Assembly: GCF_963506605.1 (NCBI RefSeq)
Contig: NC_083288.1
Coordinates: forward strand, 32,860,001 to 32,924,000
Length of the DNA: 64,000 bases
From: Zootoca vivipara
Taxonomy: Eukaryota
Reading direction: 5' to 3'
The translations under genes and the position numbers were made by a program. Of the stretch, positions 1,468 through 31,600 are shown one piece after another. Numbering within the stretch: position 1 is the first letter of the stretch; every line of letters starts with the position of its first letter. Below the pieces are notes generated by a model. It worked only from the letters and a program-made list of their open reading frames with translations. It was not told the origin of the DNA and ran no database searches.

Positions 1468-1735
1468 CAGAATATGTGACAAACAAATTTTCTCTATTCC
1501 CCAGGGGCTCCCCAACTTTAATTCAACAATTGCCCTCACAATTACCTTGTCAGAAGGACAGCAATTACTTTTGATATTCAGGGAAATCCCAGTGGAATAT
1601 CAGTGTCCACTAGCAAAACAAACAGCAAAGTCTGTGAAGGATGTAATAAATATACCCAGTAAAATTCAGGGTCAGGGAGAAGAATTTAGAACAGGGCAAA
1701 GATCCACAGTTCTGCTCTTGGATATTGCAAGTTCG
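1468..1735 (+). promoter_or_regulatory. Conserved V2R upstream/promoter module, gene 1
   Basis: CAGAATATGTGACAAAC (1468), ATTCCCCAGGGG (1496-1507), CAATTA (1562), CCAGTGG-N11-CCACTAG (about 1589-1613), TAATAAATATA (1644), TTCTGCTCTTGGATATT (about 1710); same order upstream of all paralogs. Confidence 0.65.
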
Positions 1736-1861: not shown

Positions 1862-4800
1862 ATGGTTTTAGTCATTGTGCTCCTGGCCCTGTTACCTCAT
1901 ACGGCATGCAGGGCTCGCAGGGTTCAGTGCAGTATCCGTCACCCACAGCCTCCAGTTCACACATATCATCAGCCAGGAAACTTCATCATTGGTTCTGTAG
2001 CTTATCACGGCTGCGTGGTCACCAGTGAAATGCTTTTCTCAGAAGAACCCCTGCCAACATTGACAGATACATTTATGTAAGGCCTTGATGGTTGTTTGCT
2101 TTTCTTTCCATGCATTTGACCCTGGGATAATGAGCATTAGAGCTGCACTCTCAGAACACTGAGCTCTTGTCTTTAGCTATAGTAAAGAGTGAATGCAAGG
2201 GTGACCAAGGTGGTGCTCTGAGTGCCGTTAGATTGCAACTCCCATCAGCCCTAGGCAAAATGGCCAATGGCCAGTTAGTTGTACAATGACTAACCATCAA
2301 TTAGGGGATCCTGAAAAAAATGGAGGGGTTTTTTTTTGTCAAGTGTCAAAAAAGGTACCATGGATGGATGGAGGAAGTTTTTGTGTATCAGTTTTAGTTT
2401 TGACCATCTGTATAGATCTGCCTCTTTATTCACTTTAATTAAAGTCAATTCAAAAAGTACAGATCTTTGATTTTTGTTTATGTCCCTCCCCCCAAATAGT
2501 GCACAAGCTTATTTTTGTTGTTTAGAATTTCTTCTTTCTTTTGGTAATAAAAGCTTAAGCCAAGCCTCTGTTTCAGATAGATATTGTTTAACTTACCACA
2601 TAACCTTAAAACTGCAGTATTGATATACAGGATATGCATTTGAAGGCAGAACTCCTTGTCATTTCTTCTTGTGCACCATATCAAGCCACAGCCCGTGAAA
2701 AGCTTAAAGACTTACACACAAGCCCCTTTTGATACACTTGATCACGCCAACATTGTTTTAATATCTCCTAATTTTCAAAAGGTGCTCAGCTTGACCATTT
2801 TGGCTGAAATCCTTTACCAAATCACCTAGGAGACGGAATGGATGACTCTGTCAAATTCAGCATCCCTATCAGATGCTACCCAGCCTTTTCCCCACCAATT
2901 AACTCAAACCTTTTTGTCTAGAACAAGAGCAAATAATGCTGTTCCACCTAATGAATGGCAATTTTTCAGACATTTAACAATGGCTAAAAAGTTTCCCCTT
3001 AAGCATTTCTTTTTCAAACTAAATATGATCAGCTCGTTCAATTTTTCAATGCAGTTCATTTTAGTAAACAATATCAAACAAGCAAATACTCAGGAAGCAA
3101 ATGGTGTGTCATGTTTTGAATGGGAATACTGCTGTTGTTTATCTCTTAGGGCAAAGAATTGTTCAGGAAAGAGAATATTTGAATACTGTAATAATGAATA
3201 AATCAATAAGATGTACAACACAATGACAATGATTAAACTATGTATAAAATATGTTTTTGATACAGAACACAATTCTCATTCCAGCATAGTGCCCAAGTAT
3301 TACCAACACATCACAGCCTTGGCATTTGCAGTAAAGGAGATCAATGAAAACCCTCATATCTTACCCAATCTCACGTTGGGATTCAACATCTATGACAGCC
3401 ATAACAATGCAAGGAAGACCTATTATGCCACAATGCTGCTTCTATCAGCTCTGGAAAGATTTATCCCTAACTACATAAAGAACAACCAGGAAAATCTAAT
3501 TGCTGTCATTGGGGGACTGGATGCCCACATTTCCATTAACATGGCAAATCTATTGAATAACTATAAGATTCCGCAGGTAGGAGATTTGTGTGTTTTTGTG
3601 TGTGGTATTGGAATTTAACTGACACTCACCATTACTTGTTCCTTCTTTTTTAAAATAATATTTTTATTAGTTTTCAATTACAATCCAATAATAGCCTCAT
3701 TATAACAATTCCAATTTATAATACAATTATTAATACAAATTGTTAAATACCAAATTATATAATTTACATAAAGTGTCCCCCCTGTGTGCTAGATTTGATG
3801 GTGTGATGGTTTTCTTTATTTTTGTGTTCCAAAATCTTATTAATTTCAATTACATTCCGGTCATAATAAGAATCCCTCATACAACAACTGCAATATTAAT
3901 AACTTCTATTTGTGTTGACACATTAAATGATTTATAAAACTACAAGTGAGGAATTCAGCATATATCCTTGTTTGTTCTGTGTGTGGCAATTATTCTGTCT
4001 GTGGTGTTTCTTCCTGTCCTTGTAAGGTGCTATGTTTTTCTTTCCCCGGTTGTTGCTGATGTTCTAGATATTTCTCTGTTGCTCTGCCCCATGCTTCGTT
4101 GTTTTGCAACTTTAATAACAGTTGCAAAAGGCACTCTCTCAGATAAGCCAATATTCTTTTAGCCAGAGCTATTTTAAGAAATAGGAATGCGTGTGGGGCT
4201 GTGGGTTAAACCACTGAGCCTAGGGCTTGTCGATCGGAAGGTCGGCAGTTCGAATCCCCACGACGGGGTGAGCTCCTGTTGCTCGGTCCCAGCTCCTGCC
4301 AACCAAGCAATTTGAAAGCATGCCAAAAAGTGCAAGTAGAGAAATAGGTACCACTCTGGCGGGAAGGTAAACGGCGTTTTCGTGCACTGCTCTGGTTTCG
4401 CCAGAAATGGCTTAGTCATGCTGGCCACATGACCTGGAAAAACTGTCTGCGGACAAACGCCGGCTCCCTTGGCCAGTAAAGCGAGGTGAGCACCGCTACT
4501 CCAGAGTCGTTCACGACTGGACTTAACTGTCAGGGGTCCTTTACCTTTTTTTTTATTTTGAGAAATAAAATAGTACAATTCATGCACTTGTATTATTGTT
4601 GTGAAGACTGGTAATATAAGGTGTGGGATGAATCAAAAGTTCTACTTTGGAGGGTCCCCAAATCCTCTGGAGCAGATTTAGAGAGGGACAAGCACTCCTG
4701 AGAGGAGGGGGAATTGGCAACTATTGAATCCCACCTTAATTTGCAGACAGGTAGCTTTGATTAGGAGAGAGATGGCATGGCATTCCAGTGTTCATGGTTT

Positions 4801-7116
4801 TGAAACCTTCAGCATGATAGATACATTCTGTCAGGGTTGTTGTGACTACTCTTGAGTAACAACCTTCCACATGCTTGTCTTTTCCGACATTTTTATTAGT
4901 GCACATTATTTACAGTGTAACGAACTGCTGGTTTCATGTCTACTCGCTCGAGTCAGATTCCTGCACTGCCCCCCTTCGCGTTTTCGACCATGGTAAAAGC
5001 CTCGGAACTGAGAAGCGCCTCCCTTTCCTCCTCCTCCTCAATTCTGGCATCGGCGAGACGAGTCTTCGGTCTGACCGATTCCCGTCCTCTCTTTCCGCCT
5101 CCCTCTCTCCCTGCCTATGGAGTAGGGGCTCTTGGATGTTGCCAGAGCCCTGGCACTCCCTTTCCGTTTCCTGACTCCCTCCATCAGACCCTTCACTCTC
5201 ATAACTGCTGAGAGACGTGCTGCTTCGGATGAGGGGGGGGTTCTCTATAAACCCTCCCCCTTACACATTCTATTACTATTCTCTTTCTCCCCCTCCCCCA
5301 ATCTCTCTCCAGCTCATATATGGCTCTGTTCCATTGATGAATGATGAAACTACAGGGCATTCCTTCTACCAGATGGTCCCCCATGAAGCCCTTCAATATA
5401 CAGGGATTCTTTCTTTGCTTCTATATTTCAGATGGACATGGATTGGAGTCCTTATAATGGATGATGAAAACGGTGAAAGATTTTTGCAAACTGTGTTACC
5501 ACTCTTTTCCCAGAAAGGTGTCTGCTATGCATTCATAAAAAGAGTCCCCCTATTCACTGATCACTCTCAAATTAACCAAGTAGTAGAACACGGTGAGGAA
5601 ATATATAATGAAGTAATGAATAGTGCAGCAAATGTTGCTCTGTTTTATGGAGAATCAAAATCAACGGTGTTTTTGAGATGGATTCCATATTTTGCAGAAA
5701 ATCCACCATGTATACCAAAAGCTATGGTATGGATAACAACAGCCCAAATGGAGCTCACTTCACAAGTGTTTCAAAGGGACTGGGAAACAGAAATATTTCA
5801 TGGTGTCCTATCCTTCACAATCCACTCCAGCGACCTCCCAGAATTCAAACCATTTGTTGAGAGAAGAAATCCTTCCAGTACAAAAAGAGACGATTTCATC
5901 AGGGACTTCTGGCAACAGGCCTTCGGCTGTGTATTCCCAGATGCAGATATGGCAGATGTGGAGGAGAATATATGCACTGGGGAGGAGAAATTGGAGAGCC
6001 TTCCAGCACCATTCTTTGAGATGAGCCTGAATGGCCACAGCTATAGCATCTACAACGCTGTCTATGCTATAGCCTATGCTTTACATGACATGTCCTCATC
6101 TAGACTCAAACAGAGAGCAATGGAAAGTAAAAGGGGACTGGAGCATCAGAACCAAAAGTTGTGGCAGGTAATATGCTCCACAACTTTAATTGACAGACTA
6201 CCACAACCATGGTACAATAGACCCAAATCTGTATAAGAAAAATTTTTCCCCACGACTCTTCCACTGTTCATCTTTATTCATCTTCCACCAACTAGTATGA
6301 AAATAGTAGCCCACTAGTCTTTTTAAGATTTGCTCCTTGGTTCCATTGAATTTAGTATATGAACCATGTTCACTGCTATAAATTTCCTGATTCCTGTAGG
6401 ATATCCCTGCGACGGGGTGAGCTCCCGTTGCTTGGTCCCAGCTCCTGCCAACCTAGCAGTTCGAAAGCATGTCAAAGTGCAAGTAGATAAATAAGTACCA
6501 CTCCTGCGGGAAGGTAAACAGCATTTCCGTGTGCTGCTCTGGTTCGCCAGAAGCAGCTTTGTCATGCTGGCCACATGACCTGGAAGCTGTATGCCAGCTC
6601 CCTCAGCCAATAATGTGAGATGAGCACCGCAACCCCAGAGTCGTCACGACTGGACCTAATGGTCAGGGGTCCCTCTACCTTTATATCTATAAGGTGTGTA
6701 GGTGTAGCTTTAAGAAGCATGCTTTCTGCCCCTCATTATTCTTCCCAAGTGATCCCTTTCTCTCTCACACTTTGATCAACTAAGTAACCCACATTCCAGT
6801 TCAAGACTATACAACATGATGCCCTCCTCCAGATATTTGTTGGACTACAATGCCCATCATCCCTAACAGTTAGCCATGCTGGTTTGGACTGATAGGGGTT
6901 GGAGTCCAACAAAATCTGGAGGAGGGTGCTATGTTAAATAGTTCTGCTTTAGGTTGAGTTTAGGGATATAAAAACATGCCACATAATACGTTCCAACATT
7001 CATTCATGCTTGCTACTGCTTACTGTACTGCTGCAATTGGTTTATTTTGCACAAGTCTTTTTGCCATTTTGAAATTTTGTTTGTTCATTTAAGAGTTTTA
7101 TCCATAATTTGGAAGC

Positions 7117-10100: not shown

Positions 10101-12015
10101 CAGGCATTATGTATCCAATACTTTAAACATATTCTCATGCACTTTGCACCAGGTTGGGTGGGGGGTGGGGCGGACAGTATAGGATGCAGGAAGGGGAATG
10201 GCACCAGGGCTTGCAGGGGAAGCATGCCAGCCTGTGAGAACTTGCATCCTGAGCCAGCCCTTCTTCCACCATTGGAACTGATTTGGGTCCGAACACTGTG
10301 ACGTAAAGCAATGGCAGGCTGGTGGGGGATAGGATAGTATTGCATGTTAAGATTCCATCTGTTCAACATTTTGTATTGAGACTCCCAAACTTTTGTAAGA
10401 TAGCTAACTTCCTAAATTCTCCATAATAACACACACGAGAGAGAGAGATATCTGCAGTACTGGGAGGGAGGAGCAGTTTCTTTAAATTTTATGCTGGAGC
10501 AAGTAGTGCTAGCACCACTCATCAGCTGACTGCTCCAGCAAAGGAAAGAAGGGGAGCTCATTTTTAGCTTCTGATTATTACCAGATTGAAGCCCTAGACA
10601 TCTGATGCAAGGCAGGTGAACATGGCTTATTCAAAGGAGTCCCAAGACTCTAGTGAAAGGTGCAGCAGTTCAAGTCACAAGTCACAGCACTTAGGTGGTA
10701 TGCCTACAAGTGATAGAAAGGGTAAACACATGAGATGTTTGAAGAACAGAAGTGAATTGGGAAATGATCTTTTTGATCCCCCTCAGCCTTGATGCTGGCA
10801 ACTCGCAGCTCCGGGCCTGTTTGCTGTGCCATCCTGGGACCTGGCATAGCACAAATAACAATTTCTTGCTCCCTCTACTATTGTCCTAACCTTCGCTAGA
10901 TGTTGTGCAATGTATACCTTTTAAACAAGGCCACCAAAGCAAATTAACTGTGATTTAGTATTCCCATCTTCTTGCCACTTAGAGGATGAGTGATACTTTT
11001 CATACTGCACGTGCTGAATGAAGTATGGACAAAAATATGTGCTCTGTTTGCAAATAAAACAACCCAATTATAACTCCCCCCCAAAAAATAAGACTATATG
11101 CCTTCTTTTTCAGACATGAATGATTGTAATAAATGCTCAGAAGAAGAATATCCGAACACGAATCGGGATATGTGCATTCCGAAGGAAGTAAGCTTCTTGT
11201 CCTTTGAAGAAACTTTGGGGAGCATTTTAGTCTGTTTTATTTTTTCCTTTTCTTTGGCTACAGCTCTGGTGCTGTGGACATTTCTAAAGCACCATAGCAC
11301 ACCCATTGTCAAAGCCAACAATCGGGACCTCACCTACACTCTCCTCATCGCCCTTCTCTTCTGCTTCCTTTGTGCATTGCTATTCATCGGAAAGCCTGAG
11401 AAGGTAACATGCCTCCTCCGACAAACAACATTTGGCATCATTTTCTCAGTAGCTGTTTCTTGTGTGTTAGCAAAAACCATCACAGTAGTTCTGGCTTTCA
11501 TGGCCACCAAACCAGGATCCAAGATGAGGAAGTGGGTGGGGAAGAGAACAACCACTTCCATTGTGGCTTTCGGCTCCCTTATTCAAGCCGCTGTCTGTAC
11601 TGTGTGGCTGGGATTCTCACCCCCATTCCCAGATGTTGACACACACTCGTTGACTAAAGAAGTTGTACTAGAATGTAATGAGGGATCTGTGTCTATGTTT
11701 TACTGTGTCCTGGGCTACATGGGCTTCCTGGCTATTGTCAGCTTCACTGTGGCTTTCCTTGCCAGGAAGTTACCTGATAGTTTCAATGAAGCAAAGTTCA
11801 TCACTTTCAGCATGTTGGTCTTTTGCAGTGTTTGGTTATCCTTTATTCCCTCCTACCTTAGTACCAAGGGAAAATACATGGTTGCTGTGGAGATCTTTTC
11901 TATCTTAGCCTCCAGTGCCGGTCTGCTTTGCTGCATCTTTGCCCCCAAATGCTACATTATTGTGTTACGGCCTGAGCTGAACAACAGGGAACATCTAATA
12001 AGAAATAAGGCCTGA
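1862..12015 (+). CDS. Vomeronasal type-2 receptor (V2R, class C GPCR), gene 1; 868 aa; join(1862..2076,3285..3576,5313..6167,7887..8102,9632..9758,11114..12015)
   Basis: All introns GT-AG with compatible phases (2,0,0,0,1); total 2607 nt. Signal peptide, VFT motifs (FAVKEIN..LPNLTLG, WTWIG, YNAVYA), Cys-rich exon 5 ([11 protein letters not shown]), 7TM exon ([28 protein letters not shown]). Confidence 0.93.
3650..4165 (-). mobile_element. Probable L1-type LINE 3' end fragment
   Basis: T-rich tail with TTTATT at the left end and long T/C-skewed tract resembling the other L1 3' ends in the window; boundaries approximate. Confidence 0.35.
4183..4548 (+). mobile_element. Sauria SINE (tRNA-derived, Bov-B-related tail), full length
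   Basis: tRNA-like head with B box GTTCGAATCC, conserved body (GTGCAAGTAGA..TAGGTACC), CCTTTACCTTT tail; one of seven similar copies in the window. Confidence 0.9.
4829..5265 (-). mobile_element. Solo LTR (437 bp) with 5-bp TSD CATTC
   Basis: TG...CA termini, CATTC at 4824-4828 and 5266-5270, AATAAA on the minus strand near 4891. Confidence 0.75.
6405..6683 (+). mobile_element. Sauria SINE, 5'-truncated
   Basis: Matches body and tail of the other copies. Confidence 0.88.
6822..6925. mobile_element. Degenerate palindromic hAT-type MITE related to the 136-bp family
   Basis: CCTCCAGATATTTGTTGGACTACAA...GTCCAACAAAATCTGGAGG fold-back. Confidence 0.55.
7279..7423. mobile_element. Possible hAT-type MITE
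   Basis: CAGGGCTTTTTT...GAAAAATGCACTG imperfect termini and an internal CCCCTAAACATTTT repeat; similar ends at about 25855-25985; no clear TSD. Confidence 0.4.
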
Positions 12016-12326
12016 AGAATTTGTGCACCTGCATGTTTTAGAACTCTGGAGTTTTGCTTTTGTTTGCACATCAGAATATTTGTAAGAGCTTCCCATAAAT
12101 ATGTTTCCCCACAGATGTCACTGTTTTCTTAAATATATAATCTATAAAAGGCTCTCTATGTGGGTAGCATACAAAAATGGCAACATTAAATCAATATAAA
12201 ATTAGAGCAAATGATCTTTAAACAAAATCCATTGTATACCATCCTTAAACTGCAATAGCAATTCTATTTTGTTGGAATATAGTAAAATAGCCAGTTGCAT
12301 CAGGCTCCTCTATTATTTGTCTTCTA

Positions 12327-12327
<1 letters not shown>

Positions 12328-12379
<52 letters not shown>
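12328..12379. repeat. (TAA)n microsatellite
   Basis: Direct reading. Confidence 0.95.
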
Positions 12380-13346
12380 CTACCCATCTGACTGGGTTGC
12401 ATTACATCACACATGCATTCAGGTGTCTTCTAAATATTATATAGTTATTCATCTCCTTGACATCTGGTGGGAGGGTATTCCACAGGGTGGGTGACACTAC
12501 CAAAAATCAACCTTTTCAGTCAGAAAGCTTGGTGAAGTGGAATGTGCTTTAATGGCAAAACATTATATTATATGGTTGCACATTATATTTAATTATTTTA
12601 TTTAAATATTTGTATACTTTTTTTTTACAAAATCTATCAAAGCAATATTCAACAATCTTAAACAATGAAACTAAGAAACAAATATATCATACTTTAGTCC
12701 AAAAATGCACACCAAAAAGTGAGCTAGTTAATCAAGAGTCTGCAAATATTTGGGCTAACAAGATTGTCTTCAACCACAGGCACAGCACATCAAAGAAGGT
12801 GCCCACTGAATCACTAAATGAAGACTATTCCATAATATAGGTGCCACCACAGATAATGCTCTGGGTTATATTGCAGAATAACGTTTACTAGTTTTGAATT
12901 TAATTGGATTAGCATTTTATTTGTTTGCATCTCATTGAATTGTTAAATAAAAAAGTATAAAATAAAACAAAACAGGAGCAAGGAGAATTAATAGGGCTTA
13001 TTTCATTAGAACCACCAATTGATTTTACAAAACAGCCCAGGGAGGAACCATTCAGGGACTCTTTCACATATACAGAGGAAGGAGGCAGGCCAGAATACAG
13101 ACAATGTCTATAGCTCAGTGGATCACAAGTGGTTCACATTTCATCATGGGCAATCAAACTCATAGTTGCCTGATAATAGGGACTGTTAAAGAACATGTGT
13201 GGCATAACATAAGGTGGCTGTTGTGGGGACAAAACATAATGACTTTAATGTCGGAGCAGGTGACCCAATGCAAACATTGGTAATATTTGTGAATATTAAT
13301 GGGATATTCACTAAGAAACTTCACTCCTATCATTGGAAGTACAGGT

Positions 13347-13594
13347 GTAGTAGTAGTAGTAGTAGTTTGGATTTGATATCCCGCTTTATCACTACCCTAA
13401 GGAGTCTCAAAGCGGCTAACAATCTCCTTTCTCTTCCTCCCCACAACAAACACTCTGTGAGGTGAGTGAGGCTGAGAGACTTCAAAGAAGTGTGACTGGC
13501 CCAAGGTCACCCAGCAGCTGCATGTGGAGGAGCCGGGAATCAAACCCGGTTCACCAGATTATGAGTCCATTGCTCCTAACCACTATACCACTGG
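13347..13594 (-). mobile_element. Squam3-like tRNA-derived SINE
   Basis: Reverse complement of the copy at 28321; (CTA)n tail. Confidence 0.8.
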
Positions 13595-13715
13595 TGGGCA
13601 CAGTAGCACTCACAGGCACCATGTTGGTCACCCTTGAATAGTCTTCTTTTCTTATTTGGGGGGGGGTCATTATAAGCCCTGCCATCTGTTCCTATCTGGG
13701 AGAGAGATTTCAGCT

Positions 13716-13985
13716 GAGAATATGTGACAAACAAGTTTTCTCAGTTCCATAGGGACTACCCAACCTTAACTCAACAGCTGTCTTTAACACAATAACTATC
13801 TTCACAATTACCTCGTCAGAATGGTAATTAGTTCTGATATTCATTCAAACCCCAGTGGAATTTCAGTGTCCTCTTACAAAACAAAGAGCAAAGCCTGCTA
13901 TTAATATACCCAGTACACTTCAAAGGTAGGGAGACAGACTAGGAACAGGCAAAGATCCACAGCTCTGATCTTGGATATTCCAGGC
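13716..13985 (+). promoter_or_regulatory. Conserved V2R upstream/promoter module, gene 2
   Basis: GAGAATATGTGACAAAC, TTCCATAGGGAC (13745), TAATTA (13825), CCCAGTGGAATTTCAGT (13851), TATTAATATA, CTCTGATCTTGGATATT. Confidence 0.65.
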
Positions 13986-14075
13986 TTTGGGAATATCAGG
14001 AAAATGTGAAATGTTCAAGTAAGAAGAAAACAGAGGATTTTGTATGTAGAGTGAAGATTTGGTCTTGTACTGAGA

Positions 14076-15114
14076 ATGGTTTCAGTCATCCTGCTACTGT
14101 CCCTGTTTCCTCACATGACATGCGTAGCGTATGCTGTCCAATGCAGCTTCCATTATCCACAAGCTCCAGTTCAGACTTATAACCAGCCAGGAAACTTCAT
14201 CATTGGTGGCATTGCTTATCATGCCTGCATCGTCCACAGTGAAATACTCTTCACAAAAGAACCCCTGCCAGCGTTGACAGAATCATTTGTGTAAGGCATT
14301 AAAGATCATTTCCTTTTCTGTCCATGTATTTTGACACTCAGATAGTGAGTGGAGTTGTAAACCAACATTTGGAGGAAGGGACCAGTTTTACTACCCCAAA
14401 CCTAGCAGTTTCTCCTAATGTTAAGCAAAAAATCTGCTCTTTTTTGCAGTTCTCACTCATTACTCATTTCCCTTTGTAGCAATAGCAAATAGGCCTGCTC
14501 CACCTTCTTCCTATTCGAAGACGGCTATATTTTCTCCTCTTAAGCATTTCTTTTTCAGAATAAATATACACAGCTCATTTGACTTTTCAGTGTTGCTTAT
14601 TTTAGTAAATGATCTTTAGAAAGATATCCTACTCAGACAACACACGGTGTGTCGTGTTCTGAACTTGAAGACTAGTTTTGCTTATCTTTTAGGGCAAAGA
14701 GTTATTTATGATTAACTGCTGTAATCATGAACAAATTAAAGGGACATTAACACAGTGGAAATAATTAAGTTATGTGTGGAATATCATTTTGATACAAAAT
14801 AAAACTCTCATTCTAGCATTGTGCCTAAGTATTACCAGCACATAACAGCCTTGGCTTTTGCAGTAAAGGAGATCAATGAAAACCATCATATCTTACCCAA
14901 TCTCACGTTGGGATTCAACATCTATGACAGCCATAACAATGCAAAGAAAACATATCATGCCACAATGCTGCTTCTATCAACTCTGGAAAGATTTATCCCT
15001 AACTACGTATGTGACAACCAGAAAAATCTAATAGCTGTCATTGGGGGGCTGGATGCCCAAATTTCCATTAATGTGGCAAGCCTCTTGAATAACTTTAAGG
15101 TTCCACAGGTAGGA

Positions 15115-15178
<64 letters not shown>

Positions 15179-15661
15179 TCTCTCTCGTGTGATATGGGAA
15201 TTTAAGAGACACAGTTGATGTAGTCTGATGTTTCTGGTGTCATTTTATTTTATTAATGAATTTTATTTACAGTTTTTTACACTCACATACTTCCAATGCA
15301 GATACATATGAACCCCCCCCCCCACCTTCGTGGTTTATTCTCTTAGATTTATAATACTGCATTTTAAACTGTACTCCATTTTAGTTACTCTACAATTAAT
15401 ATTGGTAACAGTTTTAACTGCTTGGTTTAAGTTAAGCCTACCATTATTTTTCAGATATACCACAAATATTTACCACTCCTAAAAAAAAAATCCTCTTGGT
15501 TTCTTACCACACCTGCTAATTTTGCCATTCTGGCATAATCCTTCAATTTAATCAGCCACTCTTCCTTAGTTAGAACAGCATCCTCTTTCCATCTCTGGGC
15601 AAATGCCATTCTGGATGTGGTTGTAGCATACATAAACAAATTCCTTGGGAATTTCTGTATT

Positions 15662-15715
<54 letters not shown>

Positions 15716-16300
15716 GGTACCTCTACTTACGAATTTAATGCGTTCCGAACACACATTTGTAAGTCAAAAAAAGTTGTAAGTCGAATCCCATAGGAATGCA
15801 TTAGAAAAAATTCGTAAGTTGAAGCAACCCTTTCTAAAAATTGGTAAGTAGAAAAAATACTATCTAAATCGCATCCAAGATGGCGGACGGAGCTCCATTC
15901 GTAAGTAGAAACATTCATAAGTAGAGTTATTCGTAAGTAGAGGTACCACTGTATAGGAAAAGGGATCCCTGACCATTAGGTCCAGTCATGACTGACTCTG
16001 GGTTTGTGGCTCTCATCTCGCATTATTGGCTGAGGGAGCCGGCGAACAGCTTCCAGGTCATGTGGCCAGCATGACAAAGCTGCTTCTGGCGAACCAGAGC
16101 AGCGCACGAAAACACCGTTTACCTTCCCGCTGTAGCGGTACCTATTTATCTACTTGCACTTTGACATGCTTTTGAACTGCTAGGTTGGCAGGAGCTGGGA
16201 CCGAGCAATGGGAGCTTACCCCATCGCACGGATTTGAACCGCCAACCTACTGATCGGCAAACCCTAGGCTCTGTGGTTTAACCCACAGTGCCACCCACAT

Positions 16301-16361
<61 letters not shown>

Positions 16362-17572
16362 CAAACTGCCCCGTGTTCTTGAGATGAAAGTTGGTATAGA
16401 AATTTAATCGACCAATCAATAAAAAACAGGAGGTCGACTAGCCGCCACTAAAGCCAGTGTCAATCCCTCTATGTAGCCACAGTGTTTTAAATAGAAATAC
16501 ATGTTATGTGGTATGTGATATAAATTCTGTTATTGTTGTCTTACTTCCCCATCCTGCAATCTCTCTTCAGCTCATATATGGCTCTGTGCCATTGATGGAT
16601 TCTAAATCCAGTGGACGTTCTTTCTACCAGATGGTTCCCCAGGAATCCCTTCAGTACACAGGGATTCTTTCTTTGTTTCTGCATTTCAGGTGGACATGGA
16701 TTGGCATCCTTGTAATGGATAATGAAAATGGTGAAAGATTTCTGCAAACGTTGTTGCCAATGTTTTCCCAGAAAGGTGTCTGCTCTGCCTTCATAAGCAG
16801 AGTGCCTACATTAACTACTGACTCCCAAATTCATGAAATACTAGACGATGGGACAAAAATATATACTGAAGTAATGAATAGCAAAGCGAATGTTGTCCTG
16901 TTTTATGGAGAATCTAAATCCATGGTGTTTTTGAGATGGATTCCATATTTTGCAGAATATCCACCAAATCTACCCAGAAGTATAGTATGGATAACGACAG
17001 CCCAAATGGAACTCGCTTCACAATTTTATCAAAGGGACTGGGAAACAGAAATATTTCATGGTGTCCTCTCCTTCACAGTTCACTCCAATGATGTACCAGA
17101 TTTCAAATCATTTGTTGAGAAACGAAATCCTTCCCATGCAAAAGGAGATGGTTTTATCACAGGATTCTGGCAACAAGCCTTTGGCTGTGAATTCCCAAAT
17201 CCAGATGTGGGAGATGTGAAAGGGGATATTTGCACTGAGAATGAGAAATTGGAGTGCCTTTCAGCGCCATTTTTTGAAATGAGCATGTCAGGACACAGCT
17301 ACAACATATACAATGCTGTCTATGCTGTTGCCTATGCTTTACATGGTATGTTCTCGTCTATATTCAGACACAGAGGAAGGGAAGGTAAAGTGGGAGTGAA
17401 GCATCAGAATAAACAATTGTGGCAGGTAATGGGCTCAATTTCAAGTGGTACAGCACCAGAAGCAGTGCATGCTGGAGATGTATATGATACTGCATATATT
17501 GTGGGCCTGCCCCAAAATCACATTTTCGGGGGTGGAGAAGAAGATATAACTGAAATTGAATGTGTGTGTGTG

Positions 17573-17647
<75 letters not shown>

Positions 17648-17943
17648 TGAAATGAAATATCATCTTTCCTTCAGGAAAATGCTAAATGTTTGTTGAAGGC
17701 CTTTTTGCCATAACCATGAAATCCTTGTCTTTACACCTCTTTCCCAACTGTTGTGTTGCTTGTTAATTCTATAATCAGGATGTATTTATATATTTTATTT
17801 AACAATTTTGTAATTGATCCTTTTATAACCAATACTTAGAATTCCGTTGGTGCATGTAGAGCTCTGTGTATTAAAATTAAAGTATAAATTACATGCCTAA
17901 TTTGTTGTTGTTATTTATTCAATGTAAATACAGTGTGTGTGTA

Positions 17944-17974
<31 letters not shown>

Positions 17975-19040
17975 CAGCCTTTTTTAAATTCTTGCCTTTT
18001 CCAATTCAACCTAGCTCCACCATTTTCTCAGAAGTGTCTCCTTTAACAACAGTGGTGGGGACACCATTTCCTTTGACCAGCATGGAGAGTTAATGGCTGG
18101 GTTTGATATGATCAATTGGATTGTTTCCTCAAACCAATCATTTCATAGAATGAAAGTTGGGAGGGTGGATCCCAACCAAATGTTCACCATCAATGAGGAG
18201 GCCATAACATGGTGCAGTGGGTTTAATCAGGTAGGTCACTCAGTAATTGCAAATGATATCCAAGTTTCAGTGATCACTGTCTAAAACTAATTTCATCATC
18301 CTGTCATGAACCTTCATAGAATTATGTTATTCATTAGAAAAAAATCTAACTTACATAATGTCAATACATGCAGCTCTCGCTATCTGAACATAATGCATTC
18401 TCAGGAAATCATTTGTTAGCTGAGTGTTCGTATAACGAATCATCAATTTCCTTCAAATCATATGGGGAAATTTCAAATACATTCCCAATCACAGAATTTT
18501 GACCCGCAAATAACCACAAAACAAAACAGGAAACTTGCAAAAGAGAAGCAAAGGTGTGGGGAAATGATCTCTTATTTGCCCAACTCTTTTCCTTCTTCCC
18601 TCATCCTCCCACCATTGTTTCAGGCAAAATCCCTGCTATGGACCAGAAGAACACACACACCTAAGTCTTGTTAAAGGCTGCTTATTTGTTTACAGTAGTA
18701 CATGAAGGTCCAGCTGTTTGGATGTCAGAATGTTTGGTGCTTTTAGCAAGGTTTTGGTACTAATTCCTTGTGTTTGGATAAGTGATTTTTTTGTACAATG
18801 AGCATTTGGATAGTGGCACCTGTGTGTTTTGTTAATATATAGGCATGATATGATACCATATTGATTATGTTAATGAAGAAAGGTAGCAGAAGCTTGCAGC
18901 CTTGACCATATCTGATTTATGCTGATATTACTTAGGAACAAAAGAAAAGACCACAAAAACTTTTTATTATGTTTTTATGTGTGCAGGAAGCCACCCAGAG
19001 TGGCTGGGGGAACCCAGAAAGATGGGCCGGGTAATAATAA

Positions 19041-19086
<46 letters not shown>

Positions 19087-21629
19087 ATATTGATTGCAAA
19101 GTTAATTTTGCACTTTCATTTATTAATTAGTTGCAGCCTGTTTCTTTATGTAATGAGAGGTGCCATCCTGGCTTTAGGAAGAAAGTGAAGGACGGGGAAC
19201 CATTTTGCTGCTATGATTGCATCCCATGTCCTGAAGGGAAGATCTCAGGCCAAGAGGGTAAGAATTTTGTTTATACTGCATTATGAAATAGAATTGATCT
19301 GGTTACAACGTACCAGAAAGTGCCTCTAAGCTTATGGCTGTTTCAGGGCTACTTTCCTTCACCGCTTGAAATGTGATTGCAATGTTTATTTATTTTTTTT
19401 AAAAAAATATTTTTTATTAAATTTTCCAAATAAACACAAAACACAAAAAACTGATTGCAATTTATCTTAAAATTTCCCCATCTCAGTCTTTCACTCTGCT
19501 GAGCTGTGACTTCCCTCCCTCCTGTCATTCGGCTTTATTCCTCACTCCTGTCTCGCAGTTCCTTTTTATAAACATAGATAAGTTCACTTCATAGGATTTA
19601 TTTCAGTCCTGCAAGTGTCTTTAATCTTCTGCAGTTCTTCTCCATATACTCTATAAATTTACTCCATTCCCTCTGGAACTTTGTCTCTCCCTGGTTTCGA
19701 ATCCCGCAAGTCAACTTTGCCAGTTCTGCATAGTCCATCATCTTCGTTTGCCACTCCTCAATTGTCGGTATCTCCTGTAATTTCCACTTTGGGGCTAATA
19801 AAGTCCTCACCGTGGTTGTAGCATCCTATATAATAAAGTCTCTGTGTCTCTGCGTCCAGTCCCTGTGTCCCTGTGTCTGCACTACTGCACATGTGCCCCA
19901 AGGACACAGGGATTGGACGCAGAGACTTGGAGCGCAGAGACCGGCCCCTCCTCCGCCTCCTCCCGCTGTCCCAAGTGGCGACGGCCTCCTCCACCTCCCT
20001 TCTCCTGAGGAGAAGGAAGAGGCCTCTGCCGCCGCCTCCCACAGCGCGCCTCAGTTAAGCGCGCCGCCCCTTGCTCTCCCGCCTTGCCGCCCTGCGTCAC
20101 TCCACCGCAACAGGGAGGTAGAGGAGGCCGTCGCCACTCGGGACAGCGGGAGGAAGAGGAGGAGGGGCCGGTGGGCCTCAGGCGCTCGACAGAGGTGACG
20201 CCTGCGCGGTCCCAGGGCTTCTCCTTCGTTCCCGCCCGGCTAGCGCCCGTTTACTGAACGGGCTGAATGACACTAGTACATAAATAGTCTCTGATCTCCC
20301 TTTGCTATTTCCTGTCCCATTAAACCAATGGGACAATAAATGCAATGTTTATTAATGTGGACATTGAAGGCAGCAACTGTTGTAGAATAAATTATCTCAT
20401 AGTTGTGATCATTTGCCTTGGGCTATTCATATAACCACACCTTGAAGGGGGGGTGTCTCCTCAGGGTTCTCATCCATGCTGAAGGGAGAAAGCAACTGGT
20501 TTACAGCATTGGTGACCAGGCCTGTCTCAGGGCACCACAAACACCTCTGCCTGTTAACATATATGTGAATGGAAACAAACTAGTTGAAATAACACCACTA
20601 TTTGATTGCTCCAGCAAAGAAATGCACACTGAATCTACCCTGCAATTTAAATATGAAATATTTCCTTTCTGAAACGAACAATTACACCATGATATTAAGA
20701 TTAAAAACCACTTATTTTATTTTTCAGATATGAATGATTGTGATATATGCTCAGAAGAAAAATATGCAAATAATAATCAGGATGAGTGCATTTCCAAGGA
20801 TATAAGCTTCTTGTCCTTTGAAGAACCTTTGGGAGTCAGTTTAGTCTATTTCGCTCTTTCCCTTTCTTTGGTGACAGCTCTGGTGCTGTGGACATTTATG
20901 AAGCACCATGACACACCTATTATCAAGGCAAACAATCGGGACCTCACCTACACTCTCCTCATTGCCCTTCTGTTCTGCTTCCTTTGTGCACTGCTATTCA
21001 TTGGACAGCCAGAGAGGGTGAGATGTCTCCTCCGACAAATTGCTTTTGGCATCATCTTCTCAGTAGCTGTTTCTTGTATACTGGCAAAAACTATCACAGT
21101 TGTTCTGGCTTTTATGGCCACCAAACCTGGATCCAGGATGCGGAAGTGGGTAGGGAAGAGAATGACCACGTTCATTGTGGCTTCCTGCTCCCTTACTCAA
21201 GCTGCTGTCTGTACTGTGTGGCTGGGATTCTCACCCCCATTCCCAGATGTTGATATGCACTCAATGGCTAAGGAAATTGTTCTAGAATGTAATGAGGGAT
21301 CTGTGACTATGTTTTACTGTGTCCTGGGCTACATGGGCTTCTTGGCTCTTGTCAGCTTCACTGTGGCTTTCCTTGCCAGGAAGTTACCTGACAGTTTCAA
21401 CGAAGCCAAGTTCATCACTTTCAGCATGCTGGTCTTTTGCAGTGTTTGGGTATCTTTTGTTCCAACCTACCTCAGTACCAAGGGAAAATACATGGTCGCT
21501 GTGGAAATCTTTTCTATCTTAGCCTCCGGTGCTGGTCTGCTGGGTTGCATCTTTGCCCCAAAATGCTACATAATTGTGCTGCGGCCTGAGCTGAACAACA
21601 GGGAACATCTAATAAGAAATAAGGCTTGA
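14076..21629 (+). CDS. V2R gene 2; 868 aa; join(14076..14290,14817..15108,16571..17425,18015..18230,19131..19257,20728..21629)
   Basis: GT-AG introns, exon lengths identical to gene 1 (215/292/855/216/127/902), continuous frame, all class C GPCR domains present. Confidence 0.93.
15117..15186. repeat. (CT)n microsatellite just after the exon 2 donor of gene 2
   Basis: Direct reading. Confidence 0.95.
15246..15665 (-). mobile_element. L1 LINE 3' fragment (ORF2 C-terminus and 3' UTR)
   Basis: Minus-strand translation [33 protein letters not shown], homologous to the longer copy at about 27 kb. Confidence 0.75.
15712..15951. mobile_element. Tc1/mariner (Tigger/pogo-like) MITE
   Basis: TIR CAGTGGTACCTCTACTTACGAA / TTCGTAAGTAGAGGTACCACTG; TA on the right, left flank is a (CA)n run (15665-15711). 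Confidence 0.88.
15955..16303 (-). mobile_element. Sauria SINE, followed by (TA)n at 16304-16356
   Basis: Full-length reverse-oriented copy. Confidence 0.9.
17560..17645. repeat. (TG)n(AG)n compound microsatellite
   Basis: Direct reading. Confidence 0.95.
19042..19086. repeat. (GTT)n microsatellite
   Basis: Direct reading. Confidence 0.95.
19400..20340 (-). mobile_element. L1 LINE 3' fragment interrupted by a Helitron
   Basis: Minus [53 protein letters not shown]; continues after 20276. Confidence 0.78.
19824..20276 (+). mobile_element. Non-autonomous Helitron (453 bp)
   Basis: 5' TCCTATATAATAAA; 3' CTAG preceded by hairpin GCCCGTT-TACTG-AACGGGC (20245-20263); inserted between A(19823) and T(20277) with no TSD; removal restores the L1 sequence GTTGTAGCA|TACATAAA. 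Confidence 0.9.
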
Positions 21630-23508: not shown

Positions 23509-23630
23509 TAGTGGTACCTCTACTTACAAATAACTCTACTTACGAATTTTTCTACTTACAAATGGAGCTCCGTCCACCATCTTGGATGCGGTTTAGATAG
23601 GATTTTTTCTACTTACGAATTTTTAGATAC
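23509..23630. mobile_element. Truncated copy of the Tigger-like MITE family
   Basis: One TIR (GTGGTACCTCTACTTAC) plus internal sequence matching the 55412 copy. Confidence 0.8.
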
Positions 23631-24081
23631 GGTGTATGAGCAAAAGAAGGTGTCAGTAGAAAACAATCCAACCTCCAAAGCAACATTAATGGCAGTTGCC
23701 CATGAGGTCACACAGGACCAAATTGTATTTTGAAGTCAGGAGTCTCCTATTGCTGTTCTACTTCTGCTTGAAAAAGTTAATAAATATATTGTCTACTTTT
23801 CTTTTTCTTGTTAATTAAAGATATGCTCTCTAAACTTTAATCACCATGTCTTGGGTTTGTGTGTCTGTGTGAGGGGGGGTTCCAGGGAACATATGGCATG
23901 AGGTAGGGAGGAAATTCTCCCCTACACTATACAGGGATTGTTCATCTCCAGAACTCCCCCTTCTGCTCTCCTTCTCTCACTATTTAGCTATTGTATGTTG
24001 TCCTTAAGCCCTGTCTAACTCAGTACAAAGAGAACCCAACTTTTCTTAGACCATTCTAACGAGGAAGAGAAAACCTCTGTG

Positions 24082-24325
24082 CAGAATATGCGACAAACAA
24101 ATTTTCTTCAGCAATTCCATGAGGAATTGACTTCATAATTACTGTCCCCTTTCCCCCACGGACTGTAATTAAACCTGCTGCTTCTCAAAACCCCTGTGGC
24201 ATTTCAGTAGCCACTAGTAAAGCCACTGAGGAGGATGTTTTTCATATGCACAATACCATTTAGTGCTATGAAGAGGGAATGGGAAGAGGCAAGAATCTAT
24301 TCTTCTGATCTTGGCTACCCCAGGG
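24082..24325 (+). promoter_or_regulatory. Conserved V2R upstream/promoter module, gene 3
   Basis: CAGAATATGCGACAAAC, ATTCCATGAGGAA (24114), TAATTA x2 (24136, 24166), CCTGTGG-N11-CCACTAG, TTCTGATCTTGGCTA. Confidence 0.65.
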
Positions 24326-24431
24326 TCCAGGCCTTTCAGGAGAATGTGCCATTCAAATCAGTCTCTTACGGTATTGTTGCAGAAGAAATAAGAGATCTGT
24401 TCCAGTGACAACATTTGTAGTCATCCCTAGG

Positions 24432-25180
24432 ATGTCAGTTTTAGTTGTTTTGCTGCTGGTACTGTTTCCTCACATGGTGTGCAAGGCTCACATGGTTAGA
24501 TGCAGTATTCATGTTCCTCACCCTCCACTTCATACATATCATCAGGCAGGAGACTTGATCATTGGTGCTGTTGTTTCTCACTTTGGCATTATAACCAATT
24601 CAATAATTCCCTTCACTGAAGAACCCCCACCAACATTATTGGAGGAGCTTGTGTAAGGTTTCATTCTCATTGATTTTGTCATTGCAATGATCAGTCCTAC
24701 CACTCCATTCAGAGTTGGGGTTTATCAGCACAGGTCAGGGATTTAGAACTGTCACAGTGTAGGCTAGATATATTCTGCAGCTGGTCCTATGGGGCTCCTC
24801 CTGCCCGTTAGCTCTTCTGCAGGTGTAAGGCCTTTTAAGTGTGCAACTGATGCTCTTTCCTCTGCAAGAAGTTCTGCTGCAAGAAGATCAAAACAGAGGA
24901 GGTTGAAATGATGAGGTCTCAGCAGAGAGGCGGGCTCTGTTCCTTGCAAATACAGGGGTGGGGAATCAGACATGCATTTTGCAATTGCGTACATTCAATT
25001 CTCAAAATGCAATTGCATATTGAATGTTGAGGCTTTGAATACACGTCGAGGATGGCTTGCAGTTCAACTGCACCTTTGCATTATTTGCATTCTACTGGGA
25101 TTATAAATGGCATTGGAAATCTTTTCCTTTTTAAAACTTTGTTTAAAAAGCAAGTCTATAAAAATATGAAAATTGAAACT

Positions 25181-26130: not shown

Positions 26131-28578
26131 CCGTAATGAGTTTAAAAACTTAAATGCAACAATAAGGTCACAGATTAGCACAGAACACAGTGCCAATACT
26201 TAAACTAAGTGCGGATGTCCTTGCATGTAATATCTGGTACACAACACAACTCTCATTCTAGTGTACTACCTAAGTATTATCAGAATATCCTGGCCTTGGC
26301 ATTTGCAGTGAAGGAGATCAATGAAAACCCTGAGATCTTACCCAATCTTACGTTGGGCTTCCACATCTATGACAGCTATGACAATGCAAGGAGGACCTAT
26401 CATGCCTCATTGCTACTGCTATCAGCACTAAAGAGATTGCTTCCTAACTATGTATGTGACATTCAGCAAAATCTAATAGCAATCATTGGAGGACTGGAAC
26501 CCCAAATTTCTCTTTATGTGTCAACCATCCTGGATATCTATAAGATTCCACAGGTAAGTCATCATGTGTGGTGGTGGTTTGAGCATTCAACTCACACTTT
26601 CTTCAGTCTTCCAGATTTGTGTATGTGTGTATAATTAAAAGACAGAGGGAAAAGTGTTTTGGACCACATGATATGGATCTTAGAAAAATAAGACTACATG
26701 TACAGATAAAGGACAATAGTGTTTATAGTGCATTAATAAATTACGCAAACACATACACACACAGTTTGTGTTCCCAGTGTTCAAGTGGGTAAGCTTGGAC
26801 TTTTATCCCATTCAGAATTTTATTTTTTTTAATTTTTTGTTATTCTATTTGTATTTTATTCATAATTTTCATTTAGAACAAATATACATTTCAGCAACAG
26901 TTCAGCAATAATTCTAACATTTCAACATTCGACTTCCCTCCCCCTGTTTCTTCAGTTCCTTAAATTTATTTTCATCATTCCCTGCATATTCCAAATTATC
27001 TCAACTTATTCTTTAGTTCATCTGTTTTCATATATGTTTTTCAAGTTTCTACAATAATCCTGCCAATGTCTTCATCTGTTTGCAATTTGTTTGTAAATAT
27101 TCAATAAACCATTTCCATTCCTTTATAGAAAGTTTGTTGTCTTCATTTCCTATTCTTCCAGTAAGTTTTGCAATTTCTATTAATTTCTGTAGCCATTCTT
27201 CTCTCATCAGAACTTCTTCTTTCCATTTTTGGGCAAATAACATTTTTGCAGCTGCAGTTGCATACATAAATAAATTTCTATAATGTTTAGGTAGCTCTGA
27301 TCCCATAATTCCCAAGAGAAAAGCTTCTGAGTTTTTGTTTTTGTTTTTGTTTTTTTTACAAATGTTACCTTAAACATCTTTTCAATTCATTATATTCATT
27401 ATATACATTTCCCCGTAAGCTTTAACATTATTACAAGATCAGCACATATGGGAAAAGGTACCTTCTTTCTCTTTACATTTCCAACACTTATTCAATTTTG
27501 ATTTATACATTTTTGCCTGTCTACCAAGTGTTAGGTACCATCTATATAACATTTTCATATTATTTTCTCTTAAACCATAACATGCTGTAAATTTCATATC
27601 CATATTCCACAATCGTTCCCATGCTTCCATTTCTATGTTATGACCAATATCTATTGCCCAGTGTGTCATTGATGATTTCACTTGTTCATCTTTTGTCTCC
27701 TATTCCAAAAACATCTTATACATTTTAGACATCACTTTAACATTACAGTCTAAAAGGTCTCTCTCTGGTTGAGATAATTGTTCCCCAAACACCCATTTCA
27801 TATCCTTTTTAAATACTACATNNNNNNNNNNNNNNNNNNNNNNNNNNNNNNNNNNNNNNNNNNNNNNNNNNNNNNNNNNNNNNNNNNNNNNNNNNNNNNN
27901 NNNNNNNNNNNNNNNNNNNNNNNNNNNNNNNNNNNNNNNNNNNNNNNNNNNNNNNNNNNNAAACTCTTTTAATTTAAATTCTTCACCCTACTCTCTTAGC
28001 AAATTTCTATAGGTTACCCAATTTTCCTCCTCCACCACGACCACCTCCTTCTCCTCCTCCGCCACCTCTATGGCACCCAATGGTGAAAGCCAAAGTGGTG
28101 TTTTTGTGTCTAGTAAAGTTGTATATACAGACTTTTCCTAATTATATTCAGAAATTAAAATATTGCTTTTTCCTTTTTCTTTCTTGCAACCCGCATGTAG
28201 AATGAATATTGTTAGAGATTGAACAGTTTTTGGCTATATAACTACATATAATGTGAAGAGAACCACTTTTGTGTTATGCTTGTATATTTTATCTTAGTAG
28301 TAAATATTATTTTTATTATAGAGAGCCAGCGTGGTGTAGTGGTTAAGAGCGGTGGATTCGTAATCTGGTGAACCGGGTTCGCTTCCCCACTCCTCCACAT
28401 GCAGCTGCTGGGTGACCTTGGGCTAGTCCCACTTCTTTGAAGTCTTTCAGCTCCACTCACCTCACAGAGTGTTTGTTGTGGGGGAGGAAGGGAAAGGAGA
28501 ATGTTAGCCTCTTTGAGACTCCTTCGGGTGGTGATAAAGCAGGATATCAAATCCAAACTCTTCTCTTCATCTTCTATA

Positions 28579-28612: not shown

Positions 28613-31600
28613 ATGACTAGTGCTTTCTGCAAACCACTTCTGCATGGACAGGCCACCTGTCAACCCCAGAACATCTGTAGGAAGGAGGTGTATTTCGCAA
28701 ACTAGACCATAATTTTGACTGAAGCAACAATAAAAGACTCAAAACATGAGTAACTTATATTCAGGTGAGAGAGATTGTTCAGCCTGTGCAGCTAGGGTAA
28801 AAAAAAATTGACTAGATACTCATTGTAATGAGTGTTTTTTAATGATACACACATTTTTAATTTAATTTCTGAATATTAGTGAAAAGAATGACCTAGAATG
28901 GCCCAGCGGAGTTCCTCTCTCAGATATGAGCCCATGAAAATTGGAGTTGGCCAGACAGATTCATTGCATGAGAGCGATAACACACATTTACTTTACAGGG
29001 TTGTTGCAAGGATTGTTTGCACAATGTACACAAATAGCTATGAAGAATGTAAGTTGGTTTATAAATGCTGCTATTATTTCCCTCCATGCATCTCCCCTTA
29101 GGTTATATATGGCTCTACTCCAGTAATGAATGATAAAACCCCAGGCCTTTCCTTCTACCAGATGGTCCCTCAGGAAGCCCATCAGTATGTAGGGATTCTT
29201 TCTTTGCTCCTACATTTTAAGTGGACATGGATCGGGATCCTTATTATGGATGATGAGAATGGAGAAAGATTTGTGCAAGCTGCGTTTGCAGAATTTCCCC
29301 AGAAAGGTGTCTGTTTTGCCTTCATAGAAAGAGCTCCCAAATTCATTTCTGTCAGTCAGTTTAACGATATGCTACAGCAGGGTGCAAAAATATATGACCG
29401 TATCATGGGCAGCAAAGCTAACGCAGTGCTTTTCTATGGAGATTCTTATTCCATGGTGGTTCTGAGATGGTTGTTGTATCTACCAGCAATTGAGCATGTT
29501 GTAAACCAACCCAAAGGAAGAGTGTGGATAATGACAGCTCAGATGGAACTCATTTCTTTCCTCTATCAAAGGTATTGGGATACAGAAATAATCCATGGTG
29601 CTCTGTCTTTCACGATTCACTCAAATGATCCACCAGGATTCAAGACATTTGCTCAGAGAAGAAACCCTTCCAGCACAAAAGAAGATGGGTTTATCAGAGA
29701 CTTCTGGCACCAAGTCTTTGACTGTGACCTCCCAAATACTACTGTGGGTGAAGTGGATGGGAATATGTGCACTGGGAAAGAGAAGCTGGAGAGTCTTCCA
29801 GAGATCTTCTTTGAGATGAGCATGACTGGTCACAGCTATAGCATCTACAATGCTGTGTACGCAGTGGCACATGCTTTGCATGCCATATCGTCTTCAAGAG
29901 CCTTGGCAGAAAAAAGAGTACTGAACTTTCATAATCAAGATTCATGGCAGGTAATGGGCTCAACACCCTCAGAGAGCAGAGCACCATATCTGTGGCTGTT
30001 GCCAGGGCTGTCTTACCCATAGGTGCTAAGGGTGCGGGGAACCTGGGCGCCGGGCTCTCAGGGGTGCCAGGCCGAGAGTCCAGGGCCCAAGAGTTGAGTC
30101 CAGGGAAGAGCCCGCCTGTTGGTCGGAGCACCGTGGCAGGCTCTTCTGCGGTGCCTCTGCACCACGAGTTCGGGGGTGACTGAGCCAGCGAAACACTAAG
30201 GCAGGCAGCCGGTCGGCTCCACCTTCCTGTGTGCCTGGGATTGGGCAACCGGGGGGGGGCACCGGGTGGATCTTTGCACCCCAGTGTCGCATATGCTTAA
30301 GACAACCCTGTTGCATCAGCGTCTTAACTTTGTAGCAAACTCTCTAACCAATTTATTCGGCTGTTCACATCACCTCCCCATCAGTTAACAATGAAAGAGT
30401 AATCTACACTTTTGTCAGCCTCTTTTTTCTTGTGCCCAAGCTGCCTTTGAACTATTTAGGCCCTTGGACTATCTAGCTCAGTCTTCTCGATGCTGATAGT
30501 TGTTATAAAGAATTTTGGGCAGCTGTCTTTCTCAGACCTACCTGGGGATTCCAGAGAGTGAACAGTTGGGTCTTTGCATACAAAACCTGTGTTCTAAATG
30601 TGTGCTACCACCCAAACAGTGCTTATGTTGCTGTGACATTAGAGGCATTAAAATGTGATATACTATATGTTACACATGTGCATTAATTCTGTGCTGGGGC
30701 TCAATAATGATTTTATCTCACTCTGAGTCAAACTAGAATGTCAGGAAAGCTTCCCCAGTCTTTCAGTACTTTCTTCTTTTCTGAGAAAAACATATTTATG
30801 TGTTCTTATATTTATTTAGGTTTCTCTACTCTAGGTCAATGGGCTTTGCAAGAAATAAGTCTGTCTATTTGCTGCTTTTTGAGCAGTAAAGTGTTATGGT
30901 TAAAGCAAGGAACTAGGAACTTTTTTCCCTATGTAAAATCCTTATTACCATATTAAAAATTCTCCACTTCTCCACAGAAAATATTTCTTCTACAGAAGGA
31001 CTTACCAAGGTCAACGAACCAATGAATGAACTCAGGTCTCCTCTTTGTGTTTCCTGAAATGCATTTCAGTTGAACTCTCCTCATCCCCTGCCCCACAACA
31101 CTCTCCCTGCCCATTTTTCCAGTGTGTTCATCTTGGAACTGGTATTATATGGATCCTCATAGTTCTCCCAAATAGAAGAATAGTTTGAAAGCAGCTAGTA
31201 TGTCCTTTCCTCTTACCTGGAAGCTTCCTGGAATGATTTAGTGCAATGTAAAGGTGGGACATGGGACGTGGGTGGCACTGTGGTCTAATCCTAGGGCTTG
31301 CCGATCTGAAGGTCAGCAGTTCGAATCCCCGCGACGGGGTGAGCTCCCGTTGCTCGGTCCCAGCTCCTACCAACCTAGCAGTTCGAAAGCACGTCAAAGT
31401 GCAAGTAGATAAATAGGAATCGCTACAGTGGGAAGGTAAACGGTGTTTCCGTGTGCTGCTCTGGTTCGCCAGAAGCGGCTTTGTCATGCTGGCCACATGA
31501 CCTAGAAGCTGTATGCCGGCTCCCTTGGCCAATAATGCGAGATGAGCACCGCAACCCCAGAGTCGGTCGTGACTGGACCTAATGGTCAGGGGTCCCTTTA

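Follow-up and report, generated by a model that had tools for sequence, protein, structure and literature searches.

A conserved block upstream of tandem V2R genes in Zootoca vivipara as a candidate shared proximal promoter and 5' leader

V2Rs are the dominant chemosensory family in squamates, where they form arrays of hundreds of genes, and to our knowledge V2R gene choice and transcription are poorly understood even in mouse. For the mouse V1R genes, promoter regions of ~1 kb are conserved within subfamilies, with the transcription start site (TSS) lying inside and O/E-like sites clustering near it, and this promoter block has been proposed as the regulatory element that members of the family, of which each neuron expresses a single gene, have in common (PMC1955453, PMC3247230). 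In mouse OR promoters, O/E and homeodomain (Lhx2/Emx2) sites are overrepresented (PMC3247239, PMC5608512), and the OR enhancers termed Greek Islands bear a juxtaposed Lhx2/Ebf composite motif of rigid spacing that has been proposed to act in receptor choice (PMC5608512). A literature search found no paper on squamate V2R promoter architecture. The locus described here has a short block that recurs upstream of the V2R genes of one array and resembles mouse V1R and OR promoters.

The window, i.e., the whole 64-kb stretch of Zootoca vivipara DNA that was analysed, is a head-to-tail V2R array on the + strand. Exons were queried singly in protein and domain searches, with joined models serving only for reading-frame checks. 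In the first gene (g1), PF01094 (ANF_receptor) is found on exon 3 (E 2e-20) and PF00003 (7tm_3) on exon 6 (E 8e-86), and the best matches of exon 3 are squamate V2Rs (Podarcis, Salvator, Pogona, Tiliqua and others) at 53-59% identity and E down to 1e-115, in line with the identification of these genes as V2Rs in a preliminary description of this DNA. Five genes (g1-g5) were mapped, each comprising six coding exons with GT-AG borders, and the first coding exons begin with the ATG at 1862 (g1), 14076 (g2), 24432 (g3), 38387 (g4) and 48913 (g5):

1862-2076, + strand: coding exon 1 of g1, signal peptide
14076-14290, + strand: coding exon 1 of g2
24432-24652, + strand: coding exon 1 of g3
38387-38604, + strand: coding exon 1 of g4
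48913-49133, + strand: coding exon 1 of g5

Open frames of 868-876 codons are present in g1, g2, g3 and g5. From g4 exon 3 (41997-42844), 13 nt present in the four paralogs are deleted near 42123, resulting in a frameshift, and g4 is probably a pseudogene. A sixth gene (g6) contributes its upstream block alone, the ATG lying past the window end. Intronic conservation among the old paralogs is confined to ~30 nt before the exon 2 acceptor, i.e., branch point and polypyrimidine region, which are kept in all five genes (3255-3284 in g1). Runs of N interrupt g3 intron 2 (27822-27960) and g4 intron 1 (39399-39567). About 90 bp past the g5 stop, a fragment resembling the 3' part of exon 6 at 77-93% identity (60444-60541) is taken, from its sequence, to result from a small duplication of part of the exon end; the exon 6 ends that it resembles are the following:

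11860-11914: exon 6 end
21474-21527: exon 6 end
35174-35278: exon 6 end
47205-47310: exon 6 end
60197-60294: exon 6 end

Several repeats are dispersed through the array. A segment of ~560 bp upstream of g1 (254-813), overlapping a 232-codon open reading frame (38-736) that has no Pfam match, recurs in g4 intron 2 (41057-41768) at 94-96% identity and is accordingly regarded as a young repeat or small segmental copy. A family of ~290-370 bp with 80-91% identity occurs in V2R introns in both orientations:

4181-4549: repeat copy
6403-6692: repeat copy
15952-16313: repeat copy
31261-31605: repeat copy
33102-33453: repeat copy
44225-44597: repeat copy
45420-45774: repeat copy

RNA reads with many variant letters cover the copy at 15952-16313 and the adjacent repeat at 15711-15954, and the family looks like a transcribed SINE-like one. 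An element of ~150 bp (31803-31954, 35857-36017, 57694-57853 and 47660-47789; 83-94% identity) matches its own copies in both orientations and is thus palindromic; its appearance is that of a MITE or hairpin repeat. Two more short repeat families have identities of 90-94%, one at 13364-13591 and 28331-28559, the other at 15711-15954, 55409-55654 and 23510-23633, and the copy at 13364-13591 ends 113 bp before the g2 block.

By means of an nhmmer profile, a homologous block of 240-285 bp was located at six places, all on the + strand:

1455-1736, + strand: g1 upstream block (nhmmer bounds)
13704-13989, + strand: g2 upstream block with boxes A, B, C, E and F, and box D with CCTC for CCAC
24069-24329, + strand: g3 upstream block with boxes A, B (two mismatches to the EBF consensus), C, D and F, and a degenerate TATA-like box
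38020-38262, + strand: g4 upstream block, decayed, with B, C and E retained and A, D and F lost
48646-48886, + strand: g5 upstream block, diverged, with C, D and E retained and A as well as the right half of B lost
63749-63998, + strand: g6 upstream block with A, B, C and D, and F with one mismatch

The boxes, taken at their positions in g1, and the stretch between block and ATG are as follows:

1470-1483, + strand: box A
1498-1507, + strand: O/E-like box B
1539-1544, + strand: extra CAATTA
1563-1567, + strand: invariant AATTA core (box C)
1592-1610, + strand: box D inverted repeat
1613-1619, + strand: GCAAAAC
1646-1652, + strand: TATA-like box E
1711-1721, + strand: box F
1737-1861, + strand: variable leader, then a second conserved stretch (~1819-1855) abutting the g1 ATG

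From block start to ATG, the distance amounts to 407, 372, 363, 367 and 267 bp in g1-g5, respectively, and in a MAFFT alignment of the six places colinear homology extends from ~15 nt before box A to the ATG. A seventh copy was not found on either strand of the 64 kb, as the block profile returned nothing else under E 0.5. Because scores against the full profile are circular, it was rebuilt with copies omitted (g1 and g2 together), and these leave-one-out profiles recovered the omitted copies at E values of 3e-17 (g4), 2e-20 (g5), 1e-30 (g6), 7e-42 (g3), 1.5e-33 (g1) and 1.6e-25 (g2), with no further match under E 0.1 in the window. Homology, position and orientation of the block are thus observed directly, and the earlier proposal of such a block at six places upstream of V2R ATGs is borne out by the six nhmmer copies and their leave-one-out E values of 3e-17 to 7e-42. 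The copies of g4 and g5 are the most decayed. Metagenome matches to box A (>120 loci) were rejected as chance, the block profile aligning only the seeded 17-mer there (best E 0.0075).

Box A (GAATATGNGACAAA) is exact in g1, g2, g3 and g6 (4/6), these being its sole four occurrences in 64 kb, and degenerate in g4 and g5. Box B, in the form TTCC[AC]NN[AG]GG[AG], is present in five of the six copies and box C, [TC]AATTA, in all of them, each at the same aligned place and the latter with an invariant AATTA. The inverted repeat of box D (GTGG-N11-CCAC) is found in four copies and GCAAAAC in three. Box E is represented by ATAAATA, ATTAATA or TATAAA at the aligned place in g1, g2, g4 and g5 (4/6) and is degenerate in g3 and g6, while box F is exact in 3/6. 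The preliminary description had the same ordered boxes at all six places, which is right for the order, identical wherever boxes are present, but too generous for the content, as A, D and E occur in 4/6, B in 5/6, C in 6/6 and F in 3/6. Spacing is near-fixed in the C-D-E part (C-D 24-29 bp, D-D2 24 bp in 5/6 and D2-E 22-32 bp); A and B are 28-32 bp apart, and the B-C distance of 51-81 bp is loose, with 66, 81, 52, 51, 64 and 65 bp from box B to the invariant AATTA in the six copies.

For comparing the block with other non-coding DNA of the same genes, several methods were employed. With self-blastn, only exons and dispersed SINE-like repeats are returned among the old paralogs, introns aligning only in g1-g2, the youngest pair. 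Smith-Waterman Z scores, with dinucleotide shuffles as baseline, are between 6.8 and 76.7 for the region from -400 to -1 in 10/10 pairs (median 16.3), whereas twelve control classes of 400 bp, drawn from intron flanks, further upstream sequence and the downstream flank, give median values of only -0.3 to 4.3. Applying one MAFFT procedure throughout, mean pairwise identity (g1-g2 excluded) is 0.595 in the block versus 0.39-0.47 in the controls, and five-way invariant columns number 57 versus 8-25; shuffled blocks reach an identity of 0.41 and 10 invariant columns, the controls being at this shuffle baseline. In segment-versus-segment nhmmer searches, the block is matched nearly full length in 9/10 pairs, while the introns (7-9 kb per gene) show only the g1-g2 homology, non-colinear SINE matches and a few short weak ones, and the 600 bp directly upstream of the block have no nhmmer match in any pair. 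The block is the sole non-coding DNA common to all old paralog pairs and is selectively retained. The earlier remark that introns and spacers do not align agrees with self-blastn, control Z scores and nhmmer, and the possibility raised along with it, a block no better kept than intron flanks, was checked with the outcome that the block is clearly better kept by Z, identity and nhmmer.

From the sequence comparisons, the block is read here, at a probability of roughly 0.6, as the shared proximal promoter and 5' leader of one V2R subfamily, kept by purifying selection. Each tandem duplication would have passed it on, while the introns and the DNA between the genes were replaced over time. A proximal promoter had also been assumed in the preliminary description, and of this the retention above intron flanks, the position and the TATA-like box fit, whereas promoter activity, the TSS and the identity of the binding factors are what we infer from them.

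The strength of the constraint was estimated by reference to synonymous positions. Among old paralogs, identity is 0.61-0.67 at 4-fold sites (K 0.44-0.56) versus 0.54-0.64 (K 0.48-0.72) in the block, counting aligned block columns only, and for g1-g2 the values are 0.78 and 0.80, respectively. With the tree kept fixed, the block evolves at 0.94 times the third-position rate in g1, 1.01 times in g2, 0.87 times in g3, 2.07 times in g4 and 1.77 times in g5, and the elevated ratios of the last two would fit relaxed constraint there. As the block rate in g1-g3 approximates the third-position and 4-fold rate, substitution constraint is modest or absent on average. Precisely this would be expected of a neutral leftover of duplication, i.e., paralogous DNA that is still alignable beside exon 1 and has no function of its own, and the invariant columns, which do not cluster significantly apart from a weak lag-1 autocorrelation, as well as the loss of several boxes in 2/6 copies point in the same direction. 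Such a leftover is nevertheless unlikely, since twelve exon-anchored flank classes of the same age are down at the random-alignment baseline, the 600 bp directly upstream are matchless in all pairs, and the copy beside the frameshifted g4 decays faster, evolving at twice the rate of those beside g1-g3, which therefore are held back. Judged from the decayed copies, unconstrained DNA appears to change here at ~2x the third-position rate, with g1-g3 held to roughly half of this, although the factor of two may be inflated by misalignment in the decayed copies. A rate so much faster than that of third positions would also account for introns being no longer alignable.

Overall, the constraint on the block in g1-g3 seems moderate, and the term "cis-regulatory code", by which it had been introduced, is overstated for sequence whose rate of change is close to that of third codon positions. 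Conservation is highest at 1455-1500, 1558-1568, 1586-1620, 1636-1665 and 1819-1850 (g1 coordinates) and drops between these peaks. Rates differ significantly, though mildly, among sites (HKY versus HKY+G4, 2dlnL 9.7, alpha 2.1), and column conservation has a lag-1 autocorrelation of 0.13 (p 0.016). AATTA is the only invariant run of at least three columns, a run of five not being significant (permutation P 0.13). Clustering into discrete boxes is thus weakly significant, and the boxes are partly a matter of eye.

With regard to the start of transcription, box E precedes the ATG by 215, 175, 191, 203 and 80 bp in g1-g5, respectively, the short distance in g5 being due to deletion of box F and most of the leader. 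If the TATA-like box E sets initiation ~30 nt downstream, transcripts would begin some 145-185 nt upstream of the ATG in g1-g4 and some 50 nt upstream of it in g5, and the stretch 1737-1861 of g1 is probably 5' UTR. A profile of this leader ('utr') matches all five genes g1-g5, and conservation also covers the ~50 nt that precede the ATG. In mouse, V2R transcripts are longer than their CDS-only models by no more than some 350 nt (PMC4154679), and a TSS close to the ATG is therefore expected; this small excess and the TATA-like box at a fixed place would together point to initiation within the block. In g1-g3, a conserved upstream ATG, part of GAAAATGTG, is found downstream of box E and ahead of the main ATG (1745-1756, 13998-14010 and 24338-24349), and that of g1 (~1749) opens a 20-codon upstream ORF. 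These conserved ATGs fit awkwardly with an unspliced leader of ~180 nt. A 5' UTR intron was considered and rejected, as no conserved donor lies between box E and an acceptor-like TGTAG/AG at about -30.

Within 12000-17999, three same-species RNA runs of unspecified tissue leave the g1 3' flank, the g2 block and exons 1-3 of g2 without a single covering read, which does not show g2 to be silent in the vomeronasal organ; RNA depth in this interval is restricted to the SINE copies at ~13364-13591 and 15711-16313.

Transcription may instead start at or upstream of box A, in which case the block would mostly be transcribed leader, either 5' UTR or an untranslated first exon, and its conservation post-transcriptional. 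Conservation of the 50 nt before the ATG, continuing with gaps as far as box A, would suit such a transcript, but the constant mid-block position of a TATA-like box, the upstream ATGs in g1-g3, the missing conserved splice donor between box E and ATG, the short UTRs of mouse V2Rs (PMC4154679) and the lack of any match to Rfam families in the window argue against it, so that this explanation is rated somewhat below even the neutral leftover. Gene conversion keeping exon 1 and the upstream flank alike among neighbours, to which tandem paralogs are prone and which a block adjoining exon 1 could share in, is highly improbable, as block identity is not above that of synonymous sites, the block tree has the topology of the third-position tree with long terminal branches, and no high-identity patches occur.

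Returning to the preferred reading as shared promoter and leader, sites upstream of box E would recruit factors of vomeronasal sensory neurons, the candidates being the invariant homeodomain-type AATTA, the O/E(EBF)-like TTCC-N-GGGA palindrome, box A and the box D inverted repeat. Assignment of the AATTA core to homeodomain factors is plausible, and the TAATTA/CAATTA site previously proposed indeed occurs as [TC]AATTA in 6/6 copies, each time in the same alignment position. The O/E (EBF) assignment of box B is weak. Relative to the EBF consensus TCCCNNGGGA, the aligned place deviates at one position in g1, g2, g4 and g6 and at two in g3, while g5 has lost the site; the canonical left half TCCC is present in g1 only, the O/E-like site mostly reading TCCA, and near-matches to the EBF consensus number 28 window-wide versus 20 ± 4 expected. 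Moreover, the six joint occurrences of O/E and homeodomain sites are not independent, because all are part of one inherited block. AP-2 is a factor of mouse basal neurons, and scanning the six block copies for AP-2 sites (GCCNNNGGC) gave one match, in g6 only, while the same scan for ATF/CARE gave one TGACG, in g2, and a CARE site in none of the copies. The suggestion of a TALE (Meis/Pknox) core, TGACA, in box A had to be abandoned, since just g1 and g2 have it at the aligned place, g3 having CGACA and g6 GGACA, and box A varies at a single position, the T of this core (T, T, C and G). In mouse, Meis2 marks the V1R-type apical neurons, not the V2R-type basal ones (PMC9525060, PMC13354959).

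On a wider scale, squamate V2R arrays might be driven by an inherited cassette of homeodomain (Lhx2/Dlx-type), EBF-like and TATA elements at near-fixed spacing, which would apply the factor logic of mammalian OR promoters to another receptor family in reptiles and whose decay would mark genes leaving the expressed repertoire. This generalization is tentative and rather doubtful, and any role of the block in receptor choice would be pure conjecture. For practical purposes, the ~280-bp cassette offers a profile for annotating V2R starts and telling live from decaying genes as well as a fragment short enough for reporter assays, footprinting and tests of factor binding. As the evidence is comparative and comes from paralogs within one 64-kb window, the gain is a testable candidate, not a demonstrated mechanism, and it would add a receptor family and an amniote lineage to those in which vomeronasal subfamilies have conserved promoters.

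Compared with the known systems, the composite motif of the Greek Islands is not recognized in the V2R block, boxes B and C being 51-81 bp apart at variable spacing instead of juxtaposed; a CAATT directly abutting box B was noted. In addition, the block is promoter-proximal, whereas Greek Islands are intergenic enhancers. With OR promoters it has in common an O/E-like palindrome and TAATTA/CAATTA, both no more than a few hundred bp from the presumed start. However, OR promoters share motifs and not alignable sequence, while the V2R sites sit in one inherited block. The mouse V1R promoter family is the closest precedent, likewise presenting a peak of non-coding homology with O/E-like sites upstream of clustered vomeronasal paralogs. 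In contrast to it, the squamate V2R family is of class C with six coding exons, the block measures about 0.25-0.4 kb as compared to about 1 kb, and it lies directly before a coding exon, whereas the V1R block precedes a non-coding 5' exon; V1R TSSs have been mapped, while the start in the V2R block is predicted from sequence. As a concept, such a promoter is already familiar from mouse V1R and OR genes (PMC1955453, PMC3247230, PMC3247239), and the candidate described here belongs to V2R genes and to a squamate.
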